The notes under the pieces were generated by a model. That model ran no database searches. It was not told the origin of the DNA and was given only the letters and a program-made list of their open reading frames with translations. DNA of 64,000 nt. It comes from Perna viridis (taxonomy: Eukaryota). A program made the position numbers and the translations under genes. The DNA lies in NCBI GenBank assembly GCA_037379345.1, contig CM074524.1, forward strand, positions 19,340,750-19,404,749. Direction: 5' to 3'. How positions within the stretch are numbered: the stretch's first letter is position 1; each line of letters opens with the position of its first letter. This document shows positions 17,201 to 47,200 of the stretch, piece after piece.

Positions 17201-20200
17201 ATTATAACTGTATAGCTGGTTTACACAATGCAAACCTATCCAACCTAGCCACATTATAACTATATAGCTGGCTCACACAATGCAAACCTATCCAAGCTAG
17301 CCACCTTATAACTGAATAGCTGCCTCACACACCGATAGTATCTAAACTATCCACATTATAGCTGAGTAGATGGCTCACACTACTTACCTATCGTATCCAA
17401 GCTTGCCACATTATAGCTGAGTAACTGGTTACCAGCTGCCCTCATTTTCTCCTTCAATAACTGAGAAATTTCTTCACCACTTTTATTGAATTTTGAGCCT
17501 TTAGGAAATTCAACATGGAAGTAAACCTTCATTCTAAAAAATATATGAAAACTTATAATTATCACGGGAAACTAGAATTACAATTAACAGAGCTCACCAA
17601 AGAATAACCTCTAGCCCATAAATTTCTAGAATGTATTTTAATCAACAAAGTTTAAGTAGCACTCCAGATAAGAATCATGCAAAATATAATTTATGGTTGG
17701 AACACCAATATATTTGTATATTTAATATTTTGTTTAAAATGCTTAAGTAAACAGAAAATTACATGTGGCTTTTCATAGAAACCTGTCCATAAGTGATAAA
17801 AATTATATAGAATTTAAAATTAAGGGAGATAACTCTGTAAATGACACTAAAATACAATAGAAACTATTGGATTTTAAATTTGAATTAACTCCTAAGAGGA
17901 GACAGATTGGAAGAATAATTATTAATTTCATCATATAGACCTATAATGCAACTTAATAACAACAATAAATATTTGTAGCCTTTTTTGGGGGTGTATCACA
18001 TTTTACAGAATTTGCACAATTCTTACAAAGACTGCCACTTAAATATATAAATGATATATAGTAACAGACCTTCCCTTAATGTCTCTAGAGGATATGTCTA
18101 AGTCTTTTTAAAGTTTGTGTAGTTGTGACAAGTGAAGTCATGGTCAAAATGTCAGAAATCTAGAAAAATCATATTCAACTGTTTCAAATTCATCACCTTT
18201 TTCAACATTAAATATCAGTTTTTTTTTAAAACCAACATGTACTATGGTACAATCCAATTTACAGACAAAAGTTTAAGTACAGCCTATATTTTCTTTGTAC
18301 ATGTAGTTCATATACTCAAATTAAACTGACCATCATCTAGTTTGAATGATTAGAGAAAAAAAGTGTTAATAAAATATGCATGATCTGTGAAATTTGCCTG
18401 ATAACTTGTAGCTAAGATGAACAGTATTGCATGAAAAACAGTAGAATTTATAATCAAAATAGATGCACTTACAGAGAAGTTTGTGTATCTTCCTCTAACC
18501 TATCCAAAACCACTATGGACTTTGGTAACAGTAATTGTAACTGACTTTGTAAATTACTCTGAAAATAGAAAATGGATCAATTAGGAAAATATCTACCGAT
18601 AATTTATTGACAGATATCACCGAACCATTGCATTATAGATTCTCAGTGGATATCACATCAAGTAAAGATAAGAACACCCTAATTCTTTTCACTTAATTGT
18701 TCTAAATGGAAAATTTCCCTTTTAGCTTGTTCAAAAAGGGGAAGATTTTCTGTAATGGTGTTTACAGGATTTATTCAACTGTTTTACATACATGTACATG
18801 TGTGCTATCCCTAAGATTTAAAGATAGCACCCTGGTAACCCCTGAACTTAAGTTCTTTTCCGACAGCATCCTGGTAAAAATTATAACAGAAGGGCAATGT
18901 GATGCAATATGGCCCAGGGGAGACCACTGAATAGTATATGTTTATTCATTACCTTGTCTTTTTCCGTAAACTGTCTGATATCTGTTTCTAGATCTAACTC
19001 TATCATATCTTTCTCATGGGGATCTGGAATAAAAAATAGTTTAATCTATTAGCAATCAACATAACGATTCCCTACAGTGGACACTATTTATCAGGTGAAA
19101 TTGTTGTTTTAGAAGGCAATTGTTAAATGAATCATAGCCAGCACTCCACAGTTTAGTTTAGTTTCGCTAGGGATGAAAAATGACATAAATGGAAACCGGT
19201 GGTTGCTATAGTGATTAAAAATGAAGAATCTATTGTTGTAAAACATTTTCTGAAAAAAAGGGGATTTTTAAAAGTTTTTTGCAATGTTTTATATTTTTTC
19301 AATGTTGAAGGGGCTTTTTTTCAATGACAATTTGACTTCATTGTGAAAGTGAAAGTAAGTCAATTTTTTACCATGCTAAATTTAATAAGTGGATTACAAA
19401 GTGAAATAGCTCAAAATCTAACCGGCGATGCCCATATGAGGAAGAGGTTTTTGAAAGGAAAAGTTTGAACAGTTTCAGGGATTGAAATAAAAATTTCAGA
19501 TATTTTGCGGGAAATTTGATATTTTTAAACCTGATTTTATTAACTTTTTTGCAAATTGTCGCATATTTGTGCATGGTTTCTATGGTAACTCTATATGCTG
19601 TGGGTAATTTTTTTCCAGAAAATTTTTACTGCATCCTGAAGGCCTTGGCTTGAGCTATTTCTAGATATATAGATTTACAAATGCTTGACAATTTTTTAAA
19701 GTGATAAATGTTACAAAGCATCAAATTACAAGACCAAAATTAGGCAGTTCTACAATACTGTGGAGTGCTGGCATAAGGAAAATTGAAGTTGCAGTTATGC
19801 AGTCTATGAATATTGTTTTATATACCCCTTCTCATTTACATTTCATGACCCCAGCAGAAAGTTAAAAAGCTTTGTTTTACAAGTATGTAAATTACACTCT
19901 ATGTGTTAATGGTTAACTTTCTTCCTTCAATCTTTGAAATTAAAATCACACACCAGTGAACTAACCTTCTATGATGCGGATTGATGCTGTATCACTAGCT
20001 GATAGCCCCTCAGCATCCACAACTGTCAGCCTAAATGTATACTGCCCAGCCACCATATTAACTAATTGAAGTACTGCCTGGTGGTCAGAACCATTCAAAG
20101 GATCCTAGACAAAAAGGAAAGAGTAATAATGAACAGTTCTACATTTAATTATGTTCTTTGGCCCATGAAAATGTAAGTTTAAAAAAAAACCAAATTATCA

Positions 20201-23200
20201 TCAGAATTTTATTCTTTCATTGACCAAGCAATATCTCTCCCTGTATACTTGTCCCATGCTAACATTACTCAAGTGGACATATTTTCCCTCCCTACTCACC
20301 CATTCCATGCCAATAGTATTTTAAGAACATTTCCTCTCTCAGTGTGTATGTATCATGCTAACAATATTTGAGACAAGACTGTAAAAATAGTAATTTTCAC
20401 AGAAACATACTCACAGGTATAAATTTTTATTTTGGTGTTTTTGAAAAGAATTGTTTCATAGCATATAAATCAATTTAGTATGTACTATTTTTGTGCCCAT
20501 TTGTCTATAAAGTAGATACCTTTACAGTTTAAATTTAACAAGGATGAGAACAAGATATTCCCAAAACGTACCCCTGCAGCCAGACTGGTTGGTTCTCTAG
20601 TCCAGCTATAGGTTGCTATGCCCTTATCATCACTGGATTTGGAACCATCAAGTTTGACTAAATCAACCGGTAAGGTAAGAACTTGGTCTGCACCAGCATT
20701 GGCTACTGGCTTTGTGTTTGGGCCTAAAACAAAGAGATATTGAGTCAATAATATTAAAACAGATGTAAAAATGTACTAGAACCACCATTAATACTTTCAT
20801 GTATCCGTCAGAATTAAACTGTACGTTTCTCATGTCTTGTTTTATTATTCATTCAGCCTAATCTTTAACAAATGGCTGTGATAAGTAGTTGCAAAGAAAA
20901 CTGTGATGACACCATGATCACCATACACCATCTACAAAGCAGTGGGGATGTAAAATATTTAAAATTGTACCTTAAAACACAGGCAGTTATTAATGTGCCT
21001 GCTCTGGCAAAAAAATCTATTATTAGTAAATGTTCCTTGACATTTGGTATACTAAGTGGTGGTTCTTTAAATCTAGATTCAAACTGTGCATATTTTCATC
21101 AGGCTTAATTATATTCAAATAAAGCAAACTAGTTTCCTCATATACAATTTCAAACTAAGTAAAGTTGATCAACACAGGTGTATTTACATGTAAGTCAGCA
21201 AAACACAAGACACAAATTCACAAACTTACGTTCATTGACTTTAACATCATAGTTAATTGTAGAACTAATGTGTTCAACATCTCTCACTGTCAATACAAAC
21301 TCATACAGTCCATTGTGTATATGTCCTGTTGCTATGGTGACTGCTGCTTTTGGGTCTTTGATAATTAATTCATTTCCCCTATAAAATGGAACAACTGCCA
21401 AAATTGCAAGTTATGTTTTCAAATGTTTTAAAACAAATGGAAATACATATGTTTTGGATCAATAACGAATTACACATGTTTGTTTTATGCATATGGATAA
21501 ACCTGAAAAATACATGCATATCTTAAAAAATTATTAAAAAATCATAGGTTTTCCAGTAGTATTAAACTCCCTACAAAAAGTGTACACCTGGACACAGGTA
21601 TAAATACTAATATTTCATGAAATGATTTGAGAGTCATAAATATGTCTCTCATATGTTTTATGTTGTTCCTAAACACATGAAAAACATGTTTTCCAGGTGC
21701 TGTACTAAGCATACAGTATAAAAATATTATCATGTTGCAATTTTTCCAGTGTATGCATGTTTTTTTTTCTTTTGAAGTCTTCCATATTCATATTAGACTG
21801 CTGTGCTCAATGAACATTTTTTAACATATCTGGCCACATAAAGTATATTCAGGAAATTTGTTTTATCAAACATATCAAAAGTACAATTTGACCAACTACA
21901 TGGACATTGTATAATTTGCCCACCCATCTGCCACCTGACCAACATTCATCTTACCCTAACATTTTATACTACGTGAAATTCGGGCAAAATTGAGAAATTT
22001 GTCCAAATATTGCATATCAGGTACTGTAAATTCAGAACTATTCAGTGCATTTATCATTATCACATTAACCAAAAATTTATTTAAAAGGAAAAACTGTGGG
22101 AAATCATGGTAATACTTCAGGAATGGGAGTTTAATTTCTTGCAATAACATAACTCCTTCCTATTTGGCAGTACTTTCTGTGTTTATACTACAAGAAAATT
22201 TACTTACTTGATTTGTTCCCAGTTATACTCCACAATACCCTTATCATCTGTGCTATTAGAACCATTCAGCACTATAGAATTTACAGGAAGGAACAGGGTC
22301 TTTGGACCAACAACTTGGGCTACTGGGGGATGATTGGTGTCTGTAAGAAAAAAGCACCTACATCTGTATCTCTCATACAAAAACACCAGATATATTTTGT
22401 TGCCATCCAATTCATTTGTCATATACTGTGGAAGTACTTGCATTCATTGGGTACCAATTTTCATGGATTTCATGGTTAAATCAATCCATGAAATTAAAAT
22501 TCCAACAAAATACATAGTTTCCATTTCTTTGTACTGTGGAAACCTCAAATTTCTGAATCCACAAACCAACAATTGGTATGCAATCCACTAAAATTGATAT
22601 CCATGAATAAAAGTACTCTCACAGTACATGTATCAATCTTCATCTACTCATTCCATAACAAGTAATTATATTGAGATAAAAACACGCCTATGGAGTTTTC
22701 ATATCAAAACTCATACGTTATGCCAGAGCTTGCAAACTTTTTGTATTGCGCTAGACTTCTTACAATAAGGCTACTGGAACTGGAGTTATGTTGCTACAAG
22801 ACTGAAGTCATCACTACAAAAGTTTTATGATTGTCATGAATTCGTGGATCTTTACGATGTATCCATCTGCGCCATGTAAACTGCTTTGTTCAATGTGTCA
22901 TAGTTTTCCTTTCCTCATTTGTCTACCCCGAACTTGCCTTTTTATGAGCAACTCGGCGGGTGTTTCTAGAAAAGCAGAGGACGCTTACCCTATCAGTGCA
23001 TCTGGTCCATGCTCCCAGTTTTTAGTGGAGTCCGAGTTGCTCATTTACTTTTGTTACTTTGTATGTATAATCTTAGTTACTTTATGTTCTTTGTTGTGTC
23101 TGACTATTTTCTATGTCTGGTCTTTGTCCCTGGATTACATTCTTTTAGATTTCCGCTAGAATCTTGGTTCCCTTGATTACTCTTAGTCTAAGCAGAGAAA

Positions 23201-26200
23201 AATATCTATGTTAAAATTTCTACAGCGTGTAACGTGAGGATTTCAGGTAAGACCTGAGTTGTTAGATCATGGAGTTGAAAGTTACTGAAAAGTTACTACT
23301 TTTCACAGGCTTAGTTAGAAAAAAACAAACAAAGTGATGTGCCAATTCATTGAAGTTAATTTTTGGCATGGTTCTACTTTCCATGATTTTTTTTATAAAT
23401 CCAAAGAGGCAAAACTGGCTGTAATCCACAAAAAACTAAATTGACATGGGAATTTTCTCCATATTACTACAAATCTATATCTGTAAATTTTCATATGTAA
23501 CATATGTAATTGCAGTCTGATACAACAACTAAAGTTTTAATTGTTTTTTACCTGGCTTAACGAAGACATGAACATCAGCTGATGAAGTCTGTCCAGCTGT
23601 ATCTGTAACCTTAAGTGTAAACATGTAGTCACCTTCTTGGAGGTTAGACAGATGGAGATAAGGGGTCCTCACACCCTGGAGAAAAAAGACTTTTTTTTTT
23701 AAATAGAAGCATGTCACCTTTTCAATAGAAGTATAAAAAAATTTGTGAGTTAAAATCTGCACCCCAATCCTCCATCTTTTTTTTTCAAAGTCCAAAATAC
23801 ATATAACAATGACAATCAACATACATATGATATATATACATTGTATTGCACCCCATTTTTAGTACATGGTAAAACTATAATTTGAGTCAACAAATGGGAT
23901 GTTGCTTTTTACCGCAGCAATGTCTGTACATAATTTTACTCCTCTTCTTATTTATACATCTCATTTCACTTACAGTGCCATAGTACTACTAGGTTTTTTT
24001 TCCACCCTACAAGATACACAAGTTCCTATTCATTTCTTGAGTTTTTGAGAAAGGGGGAAGTGTATCTCCTTAAAAGTAAACAAGACACCATACCGTCATA
24101 TCTGCTGTCAGTTTATCATCAGCAGATTTAATCCACTCATATTCTCTGATTCCTTTATCATCAGTACTCAGGTTACCATTCAATATCACTGACGTTTGTG
24201 GAAGGCGAATGATAACATCTGAACCTGCATTTGCCTTGGGTGGGTAATCTGTCTCTGAATAAGGAAAAATACACTGTAACAGGTATGCTCAGAATACTAC
24301 TTACGTACAGCATTAGCATCATTATACATGTATAACAATGGCATGCCAAAGTCATCATCACCCATCAATTTAATTTTCTATTGATAACAATTTCGACACA
24401 CAATCTAGCAAAAAACATAAAATCTGTGAGCAATGACTCACTAGTGATACCCCTGCTTTCAGTCCACAGTAAACAGGAAGTTGTCAAAATTGTCCAAAAT
24501 AAATCCCACCATATGGTATACCTACAGGAAGAATGCCTTAAAATTTCAAGCCACTGAGAATGTTAATTGCTTAGAAAACTGTGCCAAAGAAATGTTATAG
24601 ACTGAAACACAGACAAGGGTAAAACAGTATACCCTCCTTCCTTCGGAGTGGTCTGATAACCGATAACTGGTGACCAGTCTGATTACAGTTTTGTTATGTA
24701 AAAGGATGAATGATCTGTTAAAAATAAAGCAAATGTAAAATAAAAGTATTAATTAATATTTAAATCTACTGCATTATGTTATTAATATGTGTAAAATTGA
24801 AAAATATAACAATGGAATCCATTAAATATATTGACCGCTCTGGGGTCACATGATGCGACCACCAGTTTAATGGATTGGTTTAATGGATCTATGACTGACT
24901 GAAAACTGATCAGTGAACGATGACTGATCACAATTTGTTGCAAGGATCAATTCAGGTACTGTCAATAAAAAATTGTACCACTGGTTGTCTACCAATAACA
25001 AGTGGCTCCCAAGAGCCTGAATCACTCACCTGGTAATTTTTCCCCATTCAAGGGCAATCTTACAAGGAGTCGTCTGACAACTTTTATCCCTGGAGACTTT
25101 TTCAGGCCTTACAATAAGGTTCATTTCAGCAATTGAAAGAATTTGGATTAAACTAATGGTTTTGGAGATAAAATAAGCGAAAAACTACTCTCTGAGCCCT
25201 ATGTTCTATTTTTAGTAACAGTAGCCATATTTTTGACAGATCAATAATCCCATCAGTTCTAAGCAGGATACCCAAAAGAACATTCATCCCAAGTTTGGTT
25301 CCAATTGGTGAAGTAGTGTCAAGCCAATCTTCCTGGATACAAGCTCTAAGAATATTTACCTTTAATGACAGTTACATTAGCAACAGTAGAATTAGAAGCA
25401 CCATCAGAGTCTGTAACTGTCAATCTGAAAGAAATCAATCAAACATTTTCAATTATTAGTTTAAACATATTTTATTCATAAATTAAAATGAATAGGATTG
25501 GATAGCAGGCTAGGCCTATATACATCCTCTCCATTTTTAATTATTACAGTGAAACCTGCCTATAATGAGCCACTTTGAACCATAAAATTTGTCCAATTCA
25601 ATATTTCAATATACATTAAAACTGCTATGAAAATTTGTCAAACAGTGTTTGGTTTATACAAACCTTTTTTTCGGTGTCTGGTTTAGACAGGTTTTTGCCT
25701 TCAGCATTCAGTTTAGGCATGTTTTTGCCTTCAGTGCTCAGTTTATACAGGTTTTTTGCATTCAATATTCAGTCTAGATAGGTTATTGTCTGCCGTGTTC
25801 AGTTTAGACAGGTTTTTTGCCTTCAGTATTTAGTTTATACAAGTTTTTTGCCTTCAGTGTTCAGTTTAGAAGGTATCACTGTACAATGTATTTCAAACAT
25901 TAAAGGAAGAAAGGGCAGTTATTTTTGGACTTATAAAAGGTAAGCTCAATTCAATTTTGTTATTTAGTTGATCTAAATAAACAGTATCTAAGATAATGAA
26001 GTATACAATCTAATAAAATGATTTCTCACTCAAAAAGATAGCTGCCTGGAGCCAGATCTTTCAATGTCAACATGGCTGTATCATCTTTAAGCTGGTGTTC
26101 TTGTAATGGCCCACTTTTCTCCTCCCATTGATACTTCACTATCTTATCATCATCTGTACTGTCTGTAAACATTACATGAGTTCATAAAATTTTTAACTAC

Positions 26201-29200
26201 CTTCTTTAATGCAAAAAAAGAATTTCATATGTATTGTTTTTGCTGTTGTTTAAATGGTGACCTAAGTCAATATAGTTACATGCACATAACATGTAGGCAA
26301 TTTCAACAAGACAACTCTTTCTGATTTTTTAGTTCAAACAGATTATCTGTTAAATTGGACCATGATGTCAAGTCTGACTTATCCTCTGATATCATACATG
26401 TATACCAATTATATTGATAGTTACTTACCAGAGCCGTCAAGTATGGCGGAGTTTGGTAGTTTAACAACTTGGTTGACAGGCTTGATGACAGCAACAGGAG
26501 GAGTATTTTTCCTGGCAGGGGGCAGCACTGTTACATTAACAAAAGCTTCACCTTCCTGATGTGGTCCTGTTACATGTATTTTAAAAGTGTACAATCCTTC
26601 AATCAACTGTAATAAGAAATAAATTTGAACATTCAATTGCCTTTCATTAAAAAAAAAAATTGAATTTATCTTAGTTCAAACACTACAAATTCTGGTGAAA
26701 TCATTCTTTCCACCTTTATGCAAGCATTACTAATGTGTTACACTGACCAATGTAAGAAAAATTATAAAGACTTACATCAAAACGTGTTTATTGTTAACCG
26801 TGAAATTTTCGCTACATTTGCAGTTATTGCTTTAACACGAAAAATGAAACTGTCATGAATATTTTTTTGAAGGACATTATACTAAGTTGGAGAAAGACCA
26901 TGAATTTAAAACTGCACGAATTTAGATTAATGAAAAAAAATCATAAAAAAAAGATGGTGCAAAGTTCCCTGGATTACATAGTTTTGATTGACGACTCAAT
27001 AAATATTTAAAACAAATTCATAATCGTACCTTTTTAAAATCATTTTGTTTCATTTCTCCAATGAGGAACATATGTATTCGTTTATATAATATTTCTCCTT
27101 GAAAAATACTTAATTGAGAAGCAAATAATAAAAAGATTTTACTAAAAATTTGTTTGAAAATTGAACCTAGAAGTGTTCATTATAACTTACCTTAGATAAC
27201 TGTAATGTGTCTGTATTTTTCCCCACCATATTACCAATTTCTTTCCCATCAGGCATGGAGAGTAACACCCACTCATAATTAAACTTACTCCCTGAAGCAT
27301 GTAATACAAACATATCAGAAACATAACACTGACCCATATAATGTTTTCTTTAATTACTTCATAAGTTTTTTTTTATTTTAAAATAAATTCAATATTTCTA
27401 ATAAATATTAGTTTGTTTTAACATGTATGAGCAAAAAATATAAAAAAGGACATCAATGGAACACTAAATGATACACCGCAAAATGGTGAAAAAACGAGGA
27501 TGGCAAAATGTTCAAAAAGGCCTTACTCAAAAACTACATTCTGAATTTTGTTGACAACTGATCTTAATCTGTGTTTTATAGCACTTAACAACTGTTCAAA
27601 GTTAAAAAAAAAAAAACCAAATTAATCTTTTCTCGAGTTTTATCATTTGAAAACCATCATGGGATGGACAGAAGTACAAACGGAAACAAAACTTTTCGAA
27701 AGACACTCAGTGTGGCAGGGTATAGAAATGATGAAAAACTGAACATGGTTTCATTTGTTAGACATACATTCTACCAAAAAAATATGAAAATAACTGAAAG
27801 CATCAATTATCAATTTCATAAGGCAGACACAGACAGATGGCAGCTGTATACCAAAATATGTCTGCCAAGAGAAGAGTATATGAATTCATTCCTCTACAAT
27901 AACTGTGACCTACCTTCATCTCCTTTCCTGATGACATATGCATTCAATGTAACCTCATTCTTCGGTAACTGTATTACTTTATTTTCTCCAGCTGATACTG
28001 TCAAGTATATGACTGGAAAGGAAATATGAAATAATTATTAATGGATATTTATTTCCTTGTATGGTGCAGGGGTAGAAAAAGGAAAACTAGCTAAATCTTT
28101 TTTAATGAACTGGTCTGGAGTGAAGTTTATTTGCCCTTGTGATTTGTTTTTGGACGGAAAAAAAACATCAGAATTATGTGGCTCAAAAACTCTGTTCTTG
28201 CTGTAAGACTTGACTTGCCCATCATGGATTTTGCTTGCTGCAGGCTAGTGTGAGATTCCTTTTTTTTACCCCTGAATGAAATTCTGATGCTAAACCATCA
28301 TTGCATTAGTTGTATTGTAATTTGGGTATTAATTAGTATCAGGATAAGAATTAACAACAAAATAAAAACCACATCTAAAATCTACCAACAATCAGAATAA
28401 GTCTTCTCAATGTTAAAAACCATAAAAATTAATCCCAACAAAATTAGTGTTTAATTAAAAACCACAAAACTTTAAACCTTCAAAAATAAATGTTTCTACA
28501 ATATTCTGGATATTGTACTTCTTTTTGTTTACGTCGAGAATTAAACAAGTTAAGAATATAATCAACATAAGTGTCCATTATCTGTCAAAAATTTCATGGC
28601 CAATTTTTATGTGGTTGACATTGGAATTTTATTCTACTTTTTATAATATTTAAAACATATTGAAGTTAAAAGTAAATTTGATTTTATCTGAAATACTACA
28701 GATAGCTAAGATAGATGAGGCAGGTTTAATCTGTAAGAGGACAAATTTTAAGATAGATAGGCCCTATCAATTATGATCCACTTCCAGCAGACTTGGGACA
28801 ACTTGTCTGTGGGCTAAGATGTTCCATAGGTTCAGATACCAAAACTCTTCATTCAGTTTGTTTTTCTCATTCAGAACTATTTGGTCATTTTGCCTGAACT
28901 AAAGTTAAAAATCCTGGAAGTTTCACTACATGTACAGTGTAACTTTGTATCAGTTTAAGGCGGTATATCTAGGGTAAAGGACACAACTCTTATAAATCAT
29001 TTGAATGTTTGTATTCAACATTTTATATCAATCTCATGTAAGCATCAAAGTAACTTGGACTGATTTCATTCTATTTCAAAGGAAAGCTTGAAAGGCTTTG
29101 GTGAAATTGAATATCATACAAACATATCACTGATTTCAAAAGTTATGTCCCTTACCCTAGGTCTACCTCCTTAAATTGGATACATTAGTTGAAGGCAGAC

Positions 29201-35200: not shown

Positions 35201-38200
35201 TACCGTTACATGATTTGGTCATCATGGTCTTAAATGGAGGATTAAGGTACGGAAACACAGAATCTGAGCTCATATTGAGGTTAAAGCAGTTTGACTACAT
35301 CTTGTGGAGTAAACTAGAAAAGAAAAATCCCTACTTGCCAACAATTTTTTTCTCTGATGTGAATAGAACCAGGAACATTTTTCTTTATTTGGCATTATGT
35401 CTCTGAAACACTTATCATAACAACTGATCTCTAAAGGTTTGGAAAAATAAAACTGCTATTGATCTTTTTCCTTAATTCCTTCCTCAACAAATTGGTAAAA
35501 TTTTGTGTTGAGGAAGGATGTGAGGAAATTCTCATTTTGAGATTGTTTACGAAACATAGCTCATATATACTATTGTGAAACAAAAACCTGAACTTTAAAA
35601 CAACTTGCTGATTGCAGTAAAATATATTGCAGAGTATTACCTATGAGAACACATTGATGATTAAGATCAAACTGGTACCCCTCAATACACCTACAGGTAC
35701 CAATTCTACTGTGTGAGTGTCGAGGGATGTAACACTCCTGATAATTGTCACACTGATGGAGAAGTCCATATTCACACTGGTGAAACGTGAAATGATGGCG
35801 GGTAGGAGAGGAATGTTCTGAAATGGTTTGGTTAAAAGCAAAATAAAGCAAATGTCATAGCAAGGATTTCATATCAGTAGAAGTATTTTAGCTTAAGTTT
35901 TTCTATCCAAGGTATTATGCCTTCCTTCAGATATATGTATATATCAGTCAACTTTCTCGCAAATTAAAATTAAGCACTAAATAATCATAATCCTAGCTAT
36001 GACCATAAAAGCAGCCATAAGAAATAACTGCCAAACTAAGTACCCCCCCAAAAAAAAAACCATCTCTAAATCCATTCCAAAATAAGTCAAGAAATTCCAA
36101 AGGTATGTGTGTAGTCATGAATTGTTTCCCAAAAACACAGGTAAATTTTACAATTGGAACTCCTCAGCCTTTCTAGTTACACAAAAGAAAAACCTCGTAG
36201 GCACTAGGTGGCAGAGCCTTTTCAGAATTTGACCAATCTGATTCTAAAATTATAGTTTTACTAGTTGAAATTTTTACCATTACTAATTTTCCTAGCTTCT
36301 CGCGTCAAAATTCTTGACAGAGTTATTGTTCTTTAATTCTAGTGACATCTAACCATTATGATGAACTATATATGGTGACTTAAAACTTCTACAAAATTTG
36401 AAAAAAATTCATTGAGTGGTTTCTGAGGAGTTGTGTCCGTCAGACAGACACAAGGACACCAGTATTTCTTTGTACCCTTCTGTGCTGTGCCGGGGGACAA
36501 AAATACAATCTAATTTTACACTTTAAAGCAATGTCATAATCCTTTTTTCCATTACCGTTATACCAAAGTCATGTAAAATCTGAACACCCTGACCTTGGGA
36601 ATCTCTTGAAACACAAATACCTTCTAGTATTTCTATCAATTTGACAATCTATTATGAGCAAAATAAACTCTTCATATCATAGAAATTAGTACAAATTTAA
36701 TTGAAAATGTATTAGGGTCAACTGAAAAAAGTCATATAGTTTTTTTGTTCTTTTTCATTTGTTCCAGATCAAATGATAGACATACTAACCTATAGGTAAA
36801 AATCCCACATTTAAAAATGAAACTATACCCAGAAAACATAACATGCATTAAGTTCATTCATAGAAGAATACTAGCAAATGATTCATTGTTAACACAATGC
36901 AAAGACAAGATATCAACATGCACTTATTTTATTAGACAGAAAGTTAATTGAAAAATTGCAGTTTACACCAATATTATAATCTGTAAAAATGTGCAATGCC
37001 TGACAAGGCTATGCAAAGGTAATTTTTTGGTTCTCAGGACAATTTTTGTTAGTATGAAAGACTAGAGATACAGGCATTTCTCTTTGACCTTGTTATTGTA
37101 AAAAAAAATATGACCAGGTTCTTGTTTACATTGTTAAAGACTGATCAAGTTACAAGAGAGGTGGGTTTTCTTTTATATTTTATTTATAAATGGGTAATAA
37201 GACATCTGCAACAGAGATCATGGAGGGCATGAGAACCAATGACTTAACTTTGCAAGGTCCAAAATATGAAACACAAGGTACACGACAAGACATTTACAGC
37301 TGAACAATCAACATGACAAAAACAGAACATTAACACTTGAAGTTAACACTAAACCATGCCAGTATACTTACTGGGGATTACAGATTAACACTAAACCATA
37401 CAAGTATACTTACTGGGGATTACAGAGTGAAGTTAACACTAAACCATACAAGTATACTTACTGGGGATTACAGATTCACACACACCATCCTGATTCTTCT
37501 CAAAGCCTTTCTTACATACACAGATTCCCATGGAAGAACTAAGTGCTGATGGTAAGTAGCATTCTTCATGTTTACTACATTCATCTCTGTCGGGGTCACA
37601 GATTGTTGGTGTTTTCTTCCCTAAAAATACAAATTATCTCCCTTGAATAAAAACAGTCAAGTTTCCTGACAAATGTTACTTAGGTTCGTATACATGGATA
37701 CATTTGTATTGAGATTTTTTAAACCTAAGTATCAAAGAAAACCCTAACAAGCAATAAAAGCGTGAACAGCGTACTGATCATCTAAAAAAATCTTTACTGG
37801 TATATAAATATGAACCTATGTAACAAGAAGAGTCTTTTCTAAACTGCAGTTTGATTAACAACTTTTGTTAGTCTTTTTATCACAAATATAAAAGATGCTC
37901 CTTTATCTAATACCAAGATAAAAGATACTCCTTTATCTAATACCAAGATAAAAGATATTCCTTTATTTAACATCTAAGAGTAATGACATAAAACTTTGTT
38001 TATATCATATATATTTCACTTTTGTGTGTCTTCTTTGAGGGGGGGTCCTTTTATAACAAGTACTTGATGCTTAATGTGATATACAAATGAAAAAGCAACT
38101 TTGATGACGTAATTAAATCTTAAATTATTAAAACAAGAAATTGCTTACTAACTTGATACCCATTAAATAACATATACCTTTTGACCTCCATATTAATTTG

Positions 38201-41200
38201 TAACTAAGTCTAAAATAGGACATTCCTCGCACGTTAAAAAACCCTACTATGGTATTCTCCCGGAGTAGGAACCATAGGGCTCTGCCACAGGAGGCTAAAT
38301 TGCCCGACCCTACCCACCTCTCCCTATTTCCAGTGGCAATCAAAATTTCTCGGCCCATTATCCTTGTGTCCCATACCATTTTTCATTTCATCATCATTTC
38401 CTGTTCATTTTATCATCCACTTCATGTTCATCGCCTGAATATAGTTGAAATATTTCTGCTCAGGTGTTAAACCCCAAAAAACAAACAAACAAACTAAAAT
38501 AGGAGGTGCACAATGGGAACATGTACATGTAACAAAGATTCTCTGAACGTATTAGTAAATTCCATTCATGGTATATGAGGAGTAACAGATAAGAGATGGG
38601 TCCCACCGTGTCCCCACGTTCATAAATGACAAGTCCATGTTCTCCTATAAGAAACCCCATATTGATTCCAATCAATATAAAAAATATATTGTGCACAATG
38701 AGAACATAATATGCAGATTCTTTTAAAGTTTCATTCAATTCCATTCAGTGACATATGAGGAGTAACAGGTAAGAGATACCCCCACCCCATTTGACATCCC
38801 CATATCCATAAAAAGTCCATGTTTTGCAATGTAAAATCCCAAAAATAATTTAGATCAATATTGAAAAAAAAAGAGGTCCACAATATGAACAAGTAATAAA
38901 GATCCTGTGAAAGTTTCATTAAATTCCATTCAGTGGTGTAGTATGCAGAATAGATAAGAGACAGGTCCCCTTGCATAGTGAAAGGAAGGACAGATGAACA
39001 GAAGGACAGCCACCCCTATCACTATATACCCCCAATTTGCAAGTGGGTGGTAGGCAGAAAACACCTTAATGCCCCCAATGCCTAACAGTAAAAGCATATT
39101 TTTTTTATATTGCAATACTGTGACCTTGACTTTTGAATAACTGATCAAATTTGCCCTAGTCTGTAAGAAATATAACATATTTTATATCATAAGAAAAATC
39201 AATAAGCCTTTTTAATGTTCTATACATAATATGCTTTTATAATGAAACATGCTTCCTCAAGATTACAGTTAATATGTTCATTGAAGGTCACGATAAGGAC
39301 ATCTCTACTCAAGTCAACAGGAAAATGGAGTCTGAAAAATCTAATAAATAAAAAATAAGATATTAAAAAAAACACAGCACATGCATCCAAAATGTGAATG
39401 TAAAGACAAGAAGACTTTCACTAGGATGAGAAAGACGATATTTATAAACCGGAGGCAAAATATTCACCAAGAAAACAAAGAAAACAAAATAAAAACCACA
39501 ACTTAGATAACATAGAGATAGAAACCATCATTAAAGACACTGCCAGCCACAAAGTAGTGAGGTTCTAATTAGCTAATAAACACAGAAACTAAAGAATTAA
39601 ACAAGCAACCAAGACTCCAATTATATCTGGTGGTGTGTGCATTAGCCGGGTAACTCCTTTGCTTCACCTTTAGAAGAAAAAGGTTAAAATGTGATATTAA
39701 TTATGTAACTTCTTCAAGTTTTACTAAATACATCTCCAAATAATTTGTAAGTAGAGACAGAGATAAAATGTCCAGACAAACATACTGCACACCATGACAA
39801 AGTTATATCAAAAGTCACAAATAGTTCATACAGATAATGAACTGAAGCTTCATTTCAAAGCCTTGGAATGATTTAAAATAAATTCAGTCAGAATTAAAAA
39901 TCAAGTGAATACACACATTATAGTCATATAAATTACTTGTGGTAAAAATATATACTCAGAAGTCTGTCATATGATGAGCATGATGGTCCATTAGAGACAA
40001 GAGTTCGACATTTACATCAATGGCTGTTAAATACTAGTTTCATAAGATTCTATACAGTTTGGAACCAGAATTTCTATATCAACCGATCAATATGACTAAA
40101 TGAAGTTAAAAACCCTGTTTTCTGAAATAAAGTACTTGTAAAACAACACACTGTATGGAGGAACATACATGTAGTCGTAGAACGCACTTTGATCCCATTT
40201 GACTATATATATATATATAGACAAACATAAAAACTGTGACTAAGTCTACCATAATTTGCCGATTCAACAACCCCTTAAAAATGTAACATGTACATGTAGA
40301 GAACATGTTATATGTTTCATAAGAAATAACTTTAAAATAAAAATGTAAACCAGGCAACATGTCATATCTTGTTTTAGAAAGTATAACATGACTACAGATG
40401 GTAATGACATAACATTATAAATCTGTTGTATTATTTTCCTTGAAATGAAAAGTTCTCTTCTTTCTCACATTGATGTTGTTCAAGCTAATTAGAGCATTGA
40501 TCACTAAGAGAGACACCCATCAAATAAATAAAATTAAAATGATTTCATAGATGAAGCTATATGTACTCAAATATGCCTTTGTAAATAATACATAATTCTC
40601 TCTGATAATGTTGTTATACAGCTGATGTCTCAACCAATGGCAATGTACAAGAGTTTATATAACACATGCTGAGTATCTGCATTTAAAGTTCAAACAATTT
40701 CTTCTTCACTGCACACATCCATTTTGAAATAAGTCACTTCTGACAGAACATATTTGAGCCACTCGTGTTTCAGAGCGTCTACATATGTAGAACTTCTGTG
40801 ATGCTTCATCCATATTAAACTGCCTGCAACTACTGATAGAGAAAATTCTTTCAAGAAAATTCATAAATTTGGTCCTGCTCAATTCCATTATGCATATCCT
40901 GCAAACTTTTAAAGCTGTTACTCAAAAACATAGGAGATAGGTAAAAGATCCATGAACCCCCACCACTTATACCCCCATTGGCAACTTGGCACACATATAG
41001 TATCTCTAATTTTGACAATATTTTACTAAACTTAAAGTTTTGCAGTGGCAGGATTTGACAATTGCCCTGGGAAGGTAAAATTACCCCTCAGACAAGTAAA
41101 GATTGATTTATACTTATCCAAAAGACAACTTAAAAATAAGTACCTTACCATGCATTAACTATCAAAAAGGTTGATCTAGTTTTCAATTCTGACAAGTAGA

Positions 41201-44200
41201 TTTTTCATTAACTTGATAGGACAAAGACCCTAAAATATATGTATCATACCCTTGAGCCATGTAGGAAAAAAAAACAGTGAACACACATTACTTTGCTTTT
41301 TTCCTGTTTTCTTGTCTGAAAAGCAAAATGACTTCTTTTCAATTCCGGAAGCAGTAAACACGTACTTGACCTATAGATGGTCCACAACAATGTGTCAAAG
41401 TTTGGAAAGATTTGATCGACCTGTTCTTTCATTATCAAGTATAAAAATATGATGACAAACAGACAAACAGACAAAAATGAAGATAAATATATACCACAAT
41501 CTGACTATTAGCTCAAAAATGCAAAAAGTATATATTTTCTAAATATAAATCTGGTTCGACTTGTTATGTATATAACTGATAATGTCTTAAGATCCAAATC
41601 ATATTCCAAAGCATTGCAACCGATCATGGACACTTGCACTTTATCATGTTTATCAAGAAATCAGAATAAAGCTATGAACATATGTGACAAGAAATACCCT
41701 TGGGCTATATACCTGTAGGGGGAAAAAAGTAGAGAACCTACATTACTTTGCTTCTTCCTTATTTTTCTTTTTTGTTTTTTTTTGTCTGAAAAGCAAAATG
41801 ACTTCTTGTTAATTCCTAAAGCAGTAAACTGAACTTTATCTATAGATGATCTACAGTATTGTGACAAAGTTTGGACAGATTTGATTGACCTGTTCTTTGA
41901 TTAACTTGTATAAAAGTGAGATGGACTGTTAGACAGACAAACTGACAAAATGAGGATATGTACCATAAACTCACAATGAGCAGGAGTTTCAAAATTCAAA
42001 TAGAATGTATTTTCTAAATATAAAACTATCTGGTTTGACTTATGCATATAACAGGCATTGCCTAAAGACCCAAATCATATTCCGAAGCAATGTTTTTGAT
42101 CATGAGCAATTGCACTTTAACATGAAATCAGAATAACACTACAAACATATGTGACAAGAAATACAATGCATCATTCACATAAAAGTATATAAGCAAGACA
42201 GCCGGTGTGTTTACTGATCAATAAGATTAATAAGCTAGAAAAACCTGTGTCAAACTGTTGAATACATGATATAATCCATTATTCACTATTTTAAATTTGT
42301 TTCAATAAAATCTTGAACCAGAATAAGTGATTTTTTTTTCTATTTTATTGTACTTATCCCATATAACCTCATAAAAATCATTTCTATTTTTATCATAAAT
42401 CAATAATATTCAAGACAGAATACATCTCTCATCTAATAGTTTTATATATGCATACACACTGTGTAAAGTTAAACACTTCAATAACTTTAGTTGATCGGCT
42501 CATTATTCATGATATTGAAAGCTAAGCAAAAACAAGAAAATCCTACAAGTAGACCACTTTGCCCATGAGGCTTTGTGATGACAAAAACGTACTTCTACTT
42601 TGTTTTTGCTAAATGCAGTCAAACATAGCCTCACTTAATCCTCAACCACTCTGTAAAACACAGATCTACTCTAAAATGCAGACAAAGGAATGACACCTGT
42701 GGTATTTTTTACAATGCAAATGATATTGGTTTGCAAAAGCAAGAGCTCTTGAGGCTACTGATCAATTACTAATTGACAAATCATTTTTTTGTAACTCTAT
42801 GTACATGGAATAGGCTGTACCAAGGATTTATAAGAAGTGTCTTCAGGAGTGGCAAATCCAGGGAGGGTCAGAACACCCCCCCCCCTTTTCCACCTACCAT
42901 GTGTTGGAAAATTTTGTTAGCTTTGTACACAATTTGGGTAAATTTAAGCAAATATAAGGCTGGATCTCCTCTGCCAGTCTTTTTAACACTTTAAATAATT
43001 TTTTTAGGAAAATTTCGGTAGTTAAGAAATTGAGAACTATGCATTAAGAAAGGGTGCCCTTTTCCCTGTGTGCACAAAGGAAGAATCAGTAACATGCCAC
43101 CCAACTGTTTGACCACACAGATTGTCTACACCAGTATATTTCAGTTACTGTGCCTGTTGAATCAAAAAGACTAATGTAAACACCTATGTCAAGCTGTTGC
43201 AGGCCTTATGTATACTAATCATTAATTGTTTTGTATTTTAGATTTATAATAAGAATCTGAGATAACAACCATCAATAAGATGAACAAACAATCCTAAAGA
43301 ATTATGTATTTACCGTGTTTACATAACAATAACACCATGTACATTGTATCAAAGGGCAGCATGAATGGGCGTTAAAATTTACTGTAGAAATACTTATATA
43401 CATGGGGAATCAATTTCACCGTTTAGGTTGATAAGATAAGGAATACAGACAGACGCAGCTGTATACTCTTGAAAAAATGCATCATGATTATCCAAACAAT
43501 TGCACTGACTATGTTTTTTCTGAAAATTTCAAATATTAATAGCAGATCATAGCAGATCCAATCCTCATCTTCAACCTATATTCCAAAAACATGATATATA
43601 AACCACATTACCTTTGTATTGAAATTTGAAATGTTCATGACAATTAACACTTCAGCAATGTAGTACATGTCACAATCACAACTGTGGGAGATAAGGACAG
43701 TGCTCTCCCTGATTATATGTATATTGCAAGTCAAATGGAATTTTTTTTTACTAAATACTAAGGTACTTTCATTTGTCTCTATCATAACTCTGAAATTTAT
43801 TCCTCTTTGTGAGAAATCCATCTTACTGTGAAAGAACTTTAATTCATGGATACCAATTTTCGTGGATTAAGGAAGAAACACAAGTTCATGGATTCTTGAA
43901 TTCGTGGTTTTGTGGTTTTCAGTACACACTTCAACGGAAATCTTCTTTTCTTTGGAACCAAATTTCATGGTTTGGCATACCCATGAAAACCACAAAAATT
44001 GGTACCCCACAAACAATAGTACTTTCACAGTAATTTTATTCATTCCTCTGTGTACAGCATATCAGCAGAGGGCAAAAACAGATGAAATCACAAACGAGCC
44101 AAGTAATACAAACAGTAATAGGCAACTGAAACCCTACTAAAGTAAAAGAATTAACTTTGGTGTTTCTGAACAGTAAGCAATTCACTTACTTTCACTAACA

Positions 44201-47200
44201 TTAACATCATATGCCATTGTAGAACTCATGTGCTCAGCATCTCTCACTGTCAACACAAACTCATATACTCTGCTACCAATATCTCCTGTTGCTATGGTAA
44301 TAGCTGCCTTGGGATCTTTGATGGTCAGCCTGTTCCCTCTGTGATAAGTATTTAAAATAGAATTGAATTACTTAAAGTTTTAACTCCCAATGAACATAGC
44401 CTTTGAAGGCCCAAACATCTTTAACAGACAGTGGAGAAACATAACTTAATTCATTTGTACAAGTATCATTAATAATGATAATGTGGTGCAAGTATAACTT
44501 AATTTTAGCAGCATTTACACATTTAATTTTAGTATCTTTGTTTCTCACATTTAATAGAGCATTAGAACTTTTGCCAATGAAAACCACAGCCATCATTTTT
44601 CTAAAATATCCCAAAACACCTAGACTTCACAAAACAACTCATCAGTCCAGTTAAAATTGGAAATCAAGTTATAGATATCCCTAATGTGTTTCATTGAAAT
44701 TTATTGTCATTTTCTATTACTTTATGGAGAACAATGTAACAATATAAAAGGAGTCTACTTACTTGGTTTGTTCCCAGTTATATTCTATAATACCCTTGTC
44801 ATCAGTACTAGTGGACCCATTCAGGACAATAGAATCCACAGGTAGGAACAAGTTCTTTGGCCCTATAACCCGGGCCACTGGAGGGTGGTTGGCATCTACA
44901 AGTGTACAAGTAATGAGAAGGCAGACAAAACAATATTCAGCTATACAGTTTACTCATACAGAGATACTCATACCTAATTATGGTAGTTCTTGAATGTACA
45001 TATGCAAACCTCCTAGAAGCTCTCTTAAGTCCTGTTACATCTTTGAACACTTGGAATAAAAATAATTAAAATCCAATCATTGATCTTTTAAAATGTAGGG
45101 TCTTCAATGCCAAGGAATGTTCTTTTTTATTTTATTGTTATTTTTAAATCCATTGGCATGTTATGTCTATCAAAAATCTATCTGAATAGACACAACTAGT
45201 GCAGTAAAAAGAGTTTTTGCATTTGGACCAGTTTTGGTGTTTTTGGTGAGTTGGATATGATCTAACAATTCAAACATTGAAAAGACCTAAAAAAAAATGT
45301 ACAAACCTTTCACACAAATATCTTGATCCTGATCATACGTGTACCCCTTGATACAGACACATTCTGTTATGTAAGATGAAAGTGTCGGTCTAACACGACA
45401 TTCCTCATTCTTTCGACAACCCGAGGGCTGACCTAGAATATTGCAACTACCTTCTGGAACTGATGGGGCACTGCCACTTGGTGAGTATTCTACAGGTTCA
45501 AAGGTGATATGTTACTTAAAATCAAACTGATTTAATGTTTTGGATACATAAAGATATCTGAATATTCCAAAAGATAATATTTAATCCAAAGGAAGCTTTG
45601 GAAGTTCTTATACTTGTAGACAACACTTTTTGGCAGAATAAAATTACAAATTGGTGAATGTATATAATAAGACTGTCTTATTCTTTGATTCAAAAGGATT
45701 AAATAATGAAGAAAAGCTCTAGAAGTTGGTTATGATGAAGCTTTCACAGTCAATTTCTGTACAATACTTTTCCTTTATAAATTGAAATAACATTTGTCCA
45801 ATCCCTTTGCTCTATATGCAATAAAATATGTTCAGTTCCTTACAAAAGTTTCCTTTTAATATAATTGGTAGGTAACACTAACAGCAAGAATATATCATAG
45901 ATATTTAAATTAATTAAAGTGACAAACCTGTACCTTTGCAGAGCCTTCTAATAGTATCAAAACTCATAAAAAGTATGCAAGTACTCACCTACATTACGAA
46001 CATTAACGAAATAAGTTTTATTAGACGTTGAAGCAGGATCCCCTGGGTCACATGATCCAGGATACGTCCTATTGCACTGGATCAAATAACACGTATCAGA
46101 CTCCAACTTTGGATTGTGGAAGAAAAATACAGCATCACAAGTGTCTTGGCTGCAACAGCTTAGAATGCATTTTGAAAGTTTAGTTGCTTTAAGGTCTTTG
46201 GAGAAGTTTCCTGCCTGGAAACCTCCCTTTGGTAAGGCACCTGGGTGTAATGCTGAGGTCACTTCTTTAGCATTAGTTGTTTTACTGCATATGTCTAGTG
46301 AACGTATACCTAAAATAATAAATCACGACATAAATTACAATGAATGTACAATGATCATACATGTTGTGAAAAAGCATTGAAAGCATTCCAAACCAGAGAC
46401 CAATTTGTATATTCACAATGTAGTTTGGCTACTTTTAGGTACACCCATACATTGCATTCATTATTAGAATTTTCTTTTTCATATTATTACCAAACTTATC
46501 ATAGTGTTAACATGAGTAAGCATCACTTTTTTCAATCATAATTACACATAAGAGGTTTTTGTTGATAATATGGTAGCTTTACCCTTATAAACAGCCACTT
46601 CACCTTCACATGCTATTTTTTTTTTAAATGTGAGTTGGGAACCCACACTTGTAAATACAAGATGAGATTTACAAGCCTTATTAAGATCAGGGACAGAAAT
46701 AAATGGTCAGTTCTCAAGAATAAAAAACTGGTTAATCATAACAACTTGATTATTCATAAATCACATCATTTTCCTGTTGAGTCATTCTCTTTTTGTTTTT
46801 TGGAAAACTTCATTCTAAGAGAAGTTTCAACCAGTTTCTTTTATGTGTTCTTAAATGAGTTCTTAATTATAAAGACTTAACTCGGAGTCTGTGGTTACTG
46901 ATTCCAAGAATTCAGTTGTACAAGAAAAAAAAAATATAACCTCAAAAAACTTTGATTTAAAAAGGTCCACAATTAAGCTACAATCCAAATTGATGGAGTA
47001 CAAAACTTGGTTTGATTTTTTAAATAAAAATATGGTATCAGCCATTAAATGTCAACTCTACTTAAAATTTGCTAATCTGATACAAATGTAACTTTTTATA
47101 TAAGAAATCCTCATCAAGATCAATAGTTGTTTTTTGTACTGCTTATTGAAGCAAAGTAGTTGAATGATTGATTAATTATTGGGGTTTAACACCCGAACAG

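Follow-up and report, generated by a model that had tools for sequence, protein, structure and literature searches.

In vertebrates, KIAA0319 and KIAA0319L carry five contiguous PKD domains, and this receptor family is used by parvoviruses. The Mytilus orthologs (for example XP_063407038 and XP_071142367) are annotated as 'dyslexia-associated protein KIAA0319-like' and contain four or five EGF-like modules between the MANSC domain and PKD1. The gene analysed here, located in a 64-kb window (the whole stretch of Perna viridis DNA studied), is the mytilid mussel ortholog of KIAA0319L (AAVR family) and is encoded on the minus strand. With the Mytilus proteins and with vertebrate KIAA0319L/AAVR and KIAA0319 it has in common a MANSC domain, PKD domains of the K319L type, a juxtamembrane region rich in Cys, one transmembrane segment and a conserved tail. 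It shares four EGF-like modules with Mytilus, but it differs from the KIAA0319L family in having six PKD domains instead of five, the sixth being non-contiguous and placed between EGF1 and EGF2. The extra PKD very probably represents a DNA-level, phase-compatible duplication of PKD4 that took place in the Perna viridis lineage and is expressed and selectively kept.

Exon matches to the Mytilus KIAA0319L-like proteins (72–76% amino acid identity over the aligned exons) are colinear on one strand from the MANSC domain to the C-terminus, and the Mytilus-guided splice model gives a single open frame of 1192 aa. The predicted order of domains is MANSC, EGF1, extra PKD, EGF2, EGF3, EGF4, PKD1–PKD5, Cys-rich region, transmembrane segment and tail; EGF1 is a six-cysteine module for which the EGF-type Pfam hits are weak. 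A home-made HMM built from PKD3–5 counted six PKD domains in this model, one at aa 175–266 and five at aa 455–925. The MANSC domain, PKD array, Cys-rich region, transmembrane segment and conserved tail are thus found together in one gene, a single-copy ortholog; the family trait of exactly five contiguous PKD domains does not hold for it, and it is still the positional ortholog.

Table 1. Features of the Perna viridis KIAA0319L ortholog, in positions of the window (A, extra PKD; B, resident PKD4; L004, the Mytilus trossulus locus)
Feature	Position	Strand	Remarks
MANSC-domain exon	45989..46322	-	aligns with Mytilus aa 22-133 at 70% aa identity; shares RNA contigs with EGF1, A1 and A2
EGF-like module 1 exon	45307..45489	-	183 nt, phase 1-1; last exon before the insert; ortholog Mytilus aa 133-195
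Exon A1	44763..44895	-	extra PKD, first half; 133 nt; in phase 1, out phase 2
Internal intron of the copy	44339..44762	-	424 nt, GT..AG, phase 2; spliced out in RNA of four runs
Exon A2	44190..44338	-	extra PKD, second half; 149 nt; in phase 2, out phase 1
EGF-like module 2 exon	37462..37620	-	159 nt, phase 1-1; first exon after the insert; sequence, splice sites, Mytilus-guided model
Resident PKD1-PKD5 block	19966..28012	-	Mytilus-guided splice model
PKD3	exons 24254-24094 + 23675-23552	-	Mytilus-guided splice model
Exon B1	22208..22340	-	resident PKD4, first half (source copy); ortholog L004:33351-33485
Exon B2	21230..21378	-	resident PKD4, second half; ortholog L004:34205-34363
PKD5	exons 20723-20572 + 20104-19966	-	Mytilus-guided splice model

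The two exons of the extra PKD are a copy of the two PKD4 exons. Their lengths are equal in both copies, the position of the internal intron and the phases 1-2-1 are identical, and the AG/GT splice sites are present. At the protein level, 71 of 93 amino acids are identical when whole codons are compared (72 of 94 with the shared 5′ split Asp codon), with 83% identity between A1 and B1 and 71% between A2 and B2; at the DNA level, 216 of 282 nucleotides are identical and 23% of the bases differ. A tblastn search within the window matched the copy with PKD4 at E = 1e-22 and 1e-20, and a DNA search of the whole 723-Mb genome gave E = 1.9e-28 and 3.1e-24, with two copies only. Genome-wide searches, for which the peptides encoded by A1 and A2 and the DNA of the A unit (44190–44895) served as queries, found close matches at the KIAA0319L locus only, together with a single weak match to the first half (55%) on another contig. 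The likeness of A and B is far beyond chance. A sequence comparison of the 424-nt intron inside A with the 829-nt intron inside B showed no similarity, and the introns flanking A and B have only a MITE-like repeat in common, which, being high-copy, is uninformative on the extent of the duplicated segment; the surroundings of A yielded neither remnants of the PKD3 or PKD5 exons nor any intron homology beyond this repeat.

Every part of a sequence-only reading of the locus that could be checked was borne out. Its coordinates, strand, exon lengths, splice sites and phases were all correct, its count of 72 identical residues in 94 was reproduced when the split codon was included, and the dissimilarity that it noted between the internal introns extends to the flanking ones, except for the repeat. 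Its description of A as a copy made at the DNA level agrees with the retention of the intron position and phase specific to PKD4, since PKD3 and PKD5 are split at other positions, in phase 0; its description of the copy as non-tandem agrees with a location in the EGF1–EGF2 intron, 22.5 kb upstream of the source.

Judged by its sequence, A belongs to the Pfam family PF22352 (K319L-like PKD, 84 positions) over the whole domain. When scored exon by exon, A1 gives 25.8 bits at positions 7–36 and A2 12.5 bits at positions 43–84, each half alone being below the 27-bit cutoff and the two together covering the profile; B1 and B2 act likewise, and the home-made HMM detects A as a full domain in the spliced model. 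As regards the conserved residues of the fold core (P..A, LP, L.G S.DD.GI..Y.W, Y.F.L.V.D), A retains 19 of 21 columns with a conservation of 85% or more across PKD3–5 of 17 species, and 27 of 32 PKD4-conserved columns. A1 matches PDB chains of the human KIAA0319L PKD (E = 4e-14), and A2 found no sequence match in the PDB. The extra domain probably adopts an Ig-like fold and would serve as an additional extracellular module towards the N terminus of the protein, far from the membrane; the earlier suggestion that a binding-type domain had been moved distally holds for its position only.

In the domain tree, A is sister to the Perna viridis PKD4 (support 100/98) within the mytilid PKD4 clade (99/88), and 16 residues common to A and B differ from those of all four outgroup mytilids. 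The Mytilus trossulus locus, located via the X1 isoform P0089 and the sole outgroup compared at the genome level, has the same two-exon structure of PKD4, and its intron between EGF1 (15460–15648) and EGF2 (18389–18550) contains no PKD-like match. One PKD4, with EGF1 joined straight to EGF2, is present in the longest isoform of each of four Mytilus species (for M. coruscus, the sole model) and in two other mytilid transcripts; five PKDs are present in all Mytilus isoforms, the two other mytilid transcripts, oysters and scallops. The insert is absent in every ortholog retrieved, from five Mytilus species, two other mytilids, oysters, scallops, a unionid, a gastropod and a brachiopod, and the arrangement with a sixth PKD occurs in none of the 84 retrieved family proteins with exactly five PKDs. 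A library-wide phmmer search with exon A2 found nothing closer than 57%, a word search with the Mytilus ortholog returned five-PKD proteins only, and a protein search with the N-terminal fragment P0113 gave two irrelevant hits. The literature search brought up neither a study of KIAA0319 in molluscs nor a previous description of the sixth-PKD arrangement. Among the sequences compared, the copy is lineage-specific; the ortholog comparison and the PKD tree, which the sequence-only reading had named as checks, both speak against an ancestral arrangement, the insert being absent at the Mytilus trossulus locus and from all orthologs retrieved, and A being sister to B.

The duplication is nevertheless old, the proportion of synonymous differences between A and B (pS 0.60) being near saturation. 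As this value is close to that between Perna viridis and Mytilus (0.70), the insert is not a recent novelty of Perna viridis alone, and it is probably shared by relatives outside the sample. Estimates of the age disagree: synonymous divergence places the event at more than half the depth of the Mytilus split, and amino acid branch lengths at approximately a quarter. The nearest species in the sample being Mytilus and the two other mytilids, neither congeners nor close relatives of Perna viridis, the limits set to the age and distribution of the insert are loose. PKD4 is the fastest-evolving PKD of the bivalve gene, with 60% identity between Perna viridis and Mytilus, compared with 81–89% for PKD5 and PKD3.

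The high synonymous divergence, which indicates that the event is not young, and a genome-level check made in one outgroup leave some room for an insert ancestral to mytilids or bivalves that disappeared from Mytilus and the remaining lineages of the sample, A and B being kept alike by ongoing gene conversion. Such a history is very unlikely, as it needs several independent losses, the insert is lacking in every ortholog retrieved, and A and B are united by their common derived residues and the strong support of their node. A run-length test found no gene conversion tract between A and B (longest identical run 16 nt, permutation p = 0.51), and with a dS of approximately 1.2 any conversion between them would have to be ancient.

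Both PKD copies are under purifying selection. Between A and B, pN is 0.12 and dN/dS is approximately 0.11 (Fisher p = 8e-14), and identity at codon positions 1, 2 and 3 is 85, 88 and 56%; the claim that the copy was kept by selection, for which dN/dS had been proposed as a check, is upheld by a ratio that is not near 1. A dN/dS of 0.11 maintained over a dS above 1 implies that a function was required in the long term. The difference in rate between A and B is not significant (8 vs. 2, 3 vs. 6 and 5 vs. 3 with different outgroups).

The copy is spliced into mRNA. The joints 45989|45489 (MANSC to EGF1), 45307|44895 (EGF1 to A1) and 44763|44338 (A1 to A2), the last two of which the sequence-only reading had predicted, were found in RNA from four runs belonging to four studies; a raw stranded RNA run provides low counts of 4–8 reads per joint, with 8 reads for two of the three joints and 4 for the other, and the remaining three studies are represented by contigs. 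Contigs of 977 and 838 nt hold MANSC-EGF1-A1-A2, with 0–1 differing letters per piece. The stretch used for RNA mapping, of no more than 6 kb, holds the MANSC, EGF1, A1 and A2 exons, and the EGF2 exon lies outside it; within this stretch no read spans 44190>37620 or ties the insert to PKD1–PKD5 in one molecule. Past 44190, the contigs continue with the five letters 'ggaag', which fit the start of EGF2, and the extension of 154–155 nt past A2 amounts with these letters to 159–160 nt, the length of the EGF2 exon. The transcript probably continues beyond EGF2. Against this background it is hardly conceivable that A is an assembly artefact or a decaying pseudo-exon pair acquired by chance: an artefact, including a duplicated or collapsed assembly, is ruled out by the extent of base differences between the copies, RNA from four studies matches the A exons and uses their splice sites, the frame is open and the conserved residues are retained, and nothing was found in favour of this reading.

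A different possibility is that the A exons form a minor or tissue-limited cassette, or part of an N-terminal transcript that is truncated, their contribution to the main receptor protein being small. Skipping A keeps the frame because the unit is of phase 1-1, and the skip model is open (1098 aa); the RNA evidence ends at the EGF2-sized stretch, and the gene has up to 18 isoforms in Mytilus. In the raw run, however, the junctions into and within the insert have no fewer reads than the upstream MANSC–EGF1 junction (4–8 reads per joint), the per-base depth of the A exons (~12–14x) exceeds that of EGF1 (~4–5x), the spliced form also occurs in the contigs of three further studies, and the low dN/dS was maintained over a long divergence; a marginal role of this kind is unlikely.

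For the preferred reading, a duplication of PKD4, the most plausible order of events would be as follows. A genomic segment with both PKD4 exons and their intron would have been duplicated, and the copy would have entered the EGF1–EGF2 intron, which is of phase 1, the reading frame being kept because the PKD4 unit and the EGF exons are both flanked by phase-1 introns. The duplication would have occurred a long time ago, though later than the split from Mytilus and from the two other mytilids of the sample. The copy is spliced into mRNA, and both copies have stayed under purifying selection.

According to Patthy's phase 1-1 rule, extracellular modules are shuffled as phase-compatible exons. The Perna viridis copy resembles such classical exon shuffling in that the unit inserted into the phase-1 intron is symmetric (phase 1-1) and codes for an entire extracellular module of Ig-like or EGF type, and differs from it in that a single gene was both donor and recipient, the copy lies at a distance of 22.5 kb from its source, across seven exons, and the unit consists of two exons with a phase-2 intron of their own. 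With tandem domain duplication, exemplified by EGF3/EGF4 in this gene and by the extra EGF module of the Mytilus X1 isoforms, it shares the intragenic copying of a module-encoding exon unit; those copies, however, adjoin their source, and the PKD copy does not.

PKD4, the fastest-evolving PKD, is also the one that was copied to a membrane-distal place and then conserved, which makes the extra domain a candidate ligand- or pathogen-facing surface; that it is a lineage-specific surface of this kind (a decoy or an added contact site) and not a neutral spacer is a speculative and improbable suggestion. The gene shows a new domain layout within an established family and is a clean case of exon shuffling, not a new kind of biology. 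It opens no new mechanism, and it can serve for a better annotation of the gene in mussels and as a test case for studies of domain rearrangement. Dispersed intragenic exon shuffling can be followed here at one locus through its donor, recipient intron, phases, expression and selection, with the empty site in a related genome, and the five-PKD layout of the KIAA0319/AAVR family, though found in all 84 five-PKD proteins retrieved, is not fixed.

The extra PKD domain (A) lies in a gene of the minus strand whose identity is indicated by a Mytilus trossulus protein annotated as 'dyslexia-associated protein KIAA0319-like' (P0009), which surfaced in a protein-library search with exon A2; its exons align colinearly with the window between 46322 and 11103 (minus strand), at 72–76% identity. 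Proteins of the KIAA0319L/AAVR family, as also seen in PDB entries, possess a MANSC domain, five PKD domains and a transmembrane segment. The Mytilus-guided splice model gives the order MANSC, EGF1, A1, A2, EGF2, EGF3, EGF4, PKD1–5, Cys-rich, transmembrane segment and tail; with A, it forms a single open frame of 1192 aa containing six PKD domains (one at aa 175–266 and five at aa 455–925), and without A the frame is still open (1098 aa). This model left unplaced the signal-peptide exon and, upstream of PKD1, a probable Thr-rich linker exon. A 101-bp tandem repeat at 14369–14682 (3.1 copies, 90% matches), similar to an exon-end minisatellite at 16167–17430, covers the 3' end of this gene's transmembrane exon and has left partial pseudo-exon copies of it at 14594–14520 and 14458–14414.

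Features of the KIAA0319L-like gene and repeat copies in the window
Feature	Position	Strand	Remarks
Exon A1	44895-44763 (133 nt)	minus	AG/GT borders, open frame
Exon A2	44338-44190 (149 nt)	minus	AG/GT borders, open frame
Exon B1	22340-22208	minus	AG/GT borders, open frame
Exon B2	21378-21230	minus	AG/GT borders, open frame
EGF1 exon	45489-45307	minus	Mytilus-guided splice model
EGF2 exon	37620-37462	minus	Mytilus-guided splice model
EGF3 exon	35817-35641	minus	Mytilus-guided splice model
EGF4 exon	34580-34371	minus	Mytilus-guided splice model
PKD1-5	28012-19966	minus	Mytilus-guided splice model
Cys-rich exon	15915-15793	minus	Mytilus-guided splice model
Transmembrane exon	14718-14622	minus	Mytilus-guided splice model
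MITE-like repeat copies	43824-44034, 31149-31361, 1123-1329, 15557-15770, 22424-22626		

Comparisons clearly relate A to the resident PKD4 (B). The alignment of the two is gap-free, with 216 of 282 nt and 71 of 93 whole codons identical, or 72 of 94, the figure of the sequence-only reading, if the shared split Asp codon is counted; the exon lengths, GT-AG sites, open frames and 1-2-1 phases that set the frame of both units were also as that reading had described. Within the window, tblastn matched the exons of A and B with E-values of 1e-22 and 1e-20, and a search of the whole 723-Mb assembly with the A-unit DNA had hits only at A (E = 1.9e-28) and at B (E = 3.1e-24); searches with the A1 and A2 exon peptides revealed no further close copy. 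The exon halves of A match the K319L-like PKD profile PF22352 (positions 7–36 and 43–84), and A keeps 19 of the 21 columns conserved over PKD3–5 of 17 species; in the PDB, A1 matched solved human KIAA0319L PKD chains (E = 4e-14), and A2 gave no sequence match.

PKD3, PKD4 and PKD5 each consist of two exons flanked by phase-1 introns, but their internal splits differ: PKD3 is interrupted after 161 nt (phase 0), PKD4 after 133 nt (phase 2) and PKD5 after 152 nt (phase 0). A has the PKD4-specific position and phase, which rules out a cDNA origin and indicates, as proposed earlier, copying from genomic DNA including the intron. As had also been noted, the introns are dissimilar: the internal ones (424 nt in A, 829 nt in B) and the flanking ones share only a MITE-like repeat of ~210 bp.

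In the M. trossulus genomic locus (L004), the EGF1 (15460–15648) and EGF2 (18389–18550) exons are separated by a 2.7-kb intron in which no PKD-like match was found, even at a lenient threshold. EGF1 is joined straight to EGF2, with a single PKD4, in all mytilid sequences compared (the longest isoforms of M. edulis, M. galloprovincialis, M. californianus and M. trossulus; M. coruscus; two other-mytilid transcripts from ENA and Logan). A home-made PKD HMM found exactly five PKD domains in 84 retrieved proteins; the retrieved proteins with more than five were unrelated multi-PKD proteins. A maximum likelihood tree was built from the PKD3, PKD4 and PKD5 domains of 17 species, without Tegillarca and Lingula PKD4, whose best matches fell on PKD5. 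It pairs A with the PKD4 of the window itself (support 100/98) and nests this pair in the mytilid PKD4 clade (99/88), itself inside the PKD4 clade (99/99); 16 residues are common to A and B and different in all four outgroup mytilids. The duplication is therefore younger than the split from the sampled Mytilus and other mytilid lineages, and the arrangement is, among the lineages compared, novel rather than ancestral, as had been suggested. The four EGF modules are also present in Mytilus KIAA0319-like proteins; in the X1 isoforms of M. edulis, M. galloprovincialis and M. californianus the count is five, so module number varies among mytilids and isoforms (also L004 20685–20879).

The duplication, though lineage-specific among the sampled taxa, is old. 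The pS between A and B (0.60) nears the 0.70 of Perna viridis versus Mytilus (552 codons), with 14/32 and 90/164 fourfold sites differing, respectively, and amino-acid branch lengths place the event at ~1/4 of the lineage depth (tips ~0.15, stem 0.47), both estimates, based on 93 codons, being rough. The longest identical run is only 16 nt (permutation p = 0.51), giving no sign of recent gene conversion. The pN is 0.12, dS ~1.2 and dN 0.13; the resulting dN/dS of 0.11, the excess of synonymous changes (Fisher p = 8e-14) and identities of 85%, 88% and 56% at codon positions 1, 2 and 3 bear out the proposed retention by selection. The rates of A and B do not differ significantly.

The insert is also expressed. 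Reads of one raw stranded RNA run and contigs from three other studies were aligned to 40400–46399, a region outside which EGF2 lies. The joints 45989/45489, 45307/44895 and 44763/44338 (CT..AC on the plus strand, i.e., GT..AG on the minus), the latter two predicted by the sequence-only reading, are present in 4/4 RNA runs, with 4, 8 and 8 raw junction reads; the first mate is always on the plus strand, as expected from minus-strand RNA. Depth per exonic base is higher in the A exons (~12–14x) than in EGF1 (~4–5x), and many RNA-type runs contain ~27% of the sampled words from 44100–45550, where the exonic share is 32%. Contigs of 977 and 838 nt span MANSC-EGF1-A1-A2 with 0–1 differing letters per piece and pass 44190 by five letters, which have one mismatch to the intron ('gtaag') and match the EGF2 start ('ggaag') exactly; a further 154–155 nt bring the overhang to 159–160 nt, the EGF2 exon length, indirectly supporting splicing of A2 to EGF2 (44190/37620). 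RNA contigs of two independent studies end at the EGF2 3' end (37462) or at most one base from it, as would be expected from alternative splicing of EGF3/EGF4, of the kind found among the many Mytilus isoforms (up to X18, M. edulis).

The evidence best supports a dispersed intragenic segmental duplication. A segment of at least 1.1 kb, comprising both PKD4 exons and their intron, would have been inserted into the phase-1 intron that separates EGF1 from EGF2, away from the PKD array, in line with the non-tandem placement proposed before; all four EGF exons are of phase 1-1, and the phase match would have provided an in-frame module immediately, retained since. Phase-compatible exon shuffling is a textbook process. 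The neutral flanks, which might have shown what mediated the copying, have decayed. The MITE-like repeat carries terminal inverted repeats and occurs in the window in at least seven copies, with RNA contig depth in the thousands on both strands. One copy follows A2 at a distance of 155 nt and another precedes B1 by ~85 nt, but the family is abundant and these copies are mutually too alike to date from the duplication.

Among PKD3–5 of this gene, PKD4 evolves much faster in bivalves than the other two (21230–22340 versus 23552–24254 and 19966–20723): amino-acid identity to Mytilus is 60% in PKD4 against 89% in PKD3 and 81% in PKD5, while to oysters and scallops the values are ~43%, ~80% and ~64%, respectively. 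Such sequence divergence would fit a ligand-facing role without demonstrating one. In M. edulis CAG2204324 (P0103, aa ~750–840), 'DVNHPPKADAG' pieces are repeated at the PKD4 start, reflecting either an exon-start minisatellite in that genome or an annotation artefact. A search of a paper library turned up no work on mollusc KIAA0319 and no account of the present arrangement. The A unit probably adds an Ig-like PKD module to a type I membrane protein, close to its N-terminal, membrane-distal end, and the gene is regarded as a new architectural variant of the known KIAA0319L/AAVR family.
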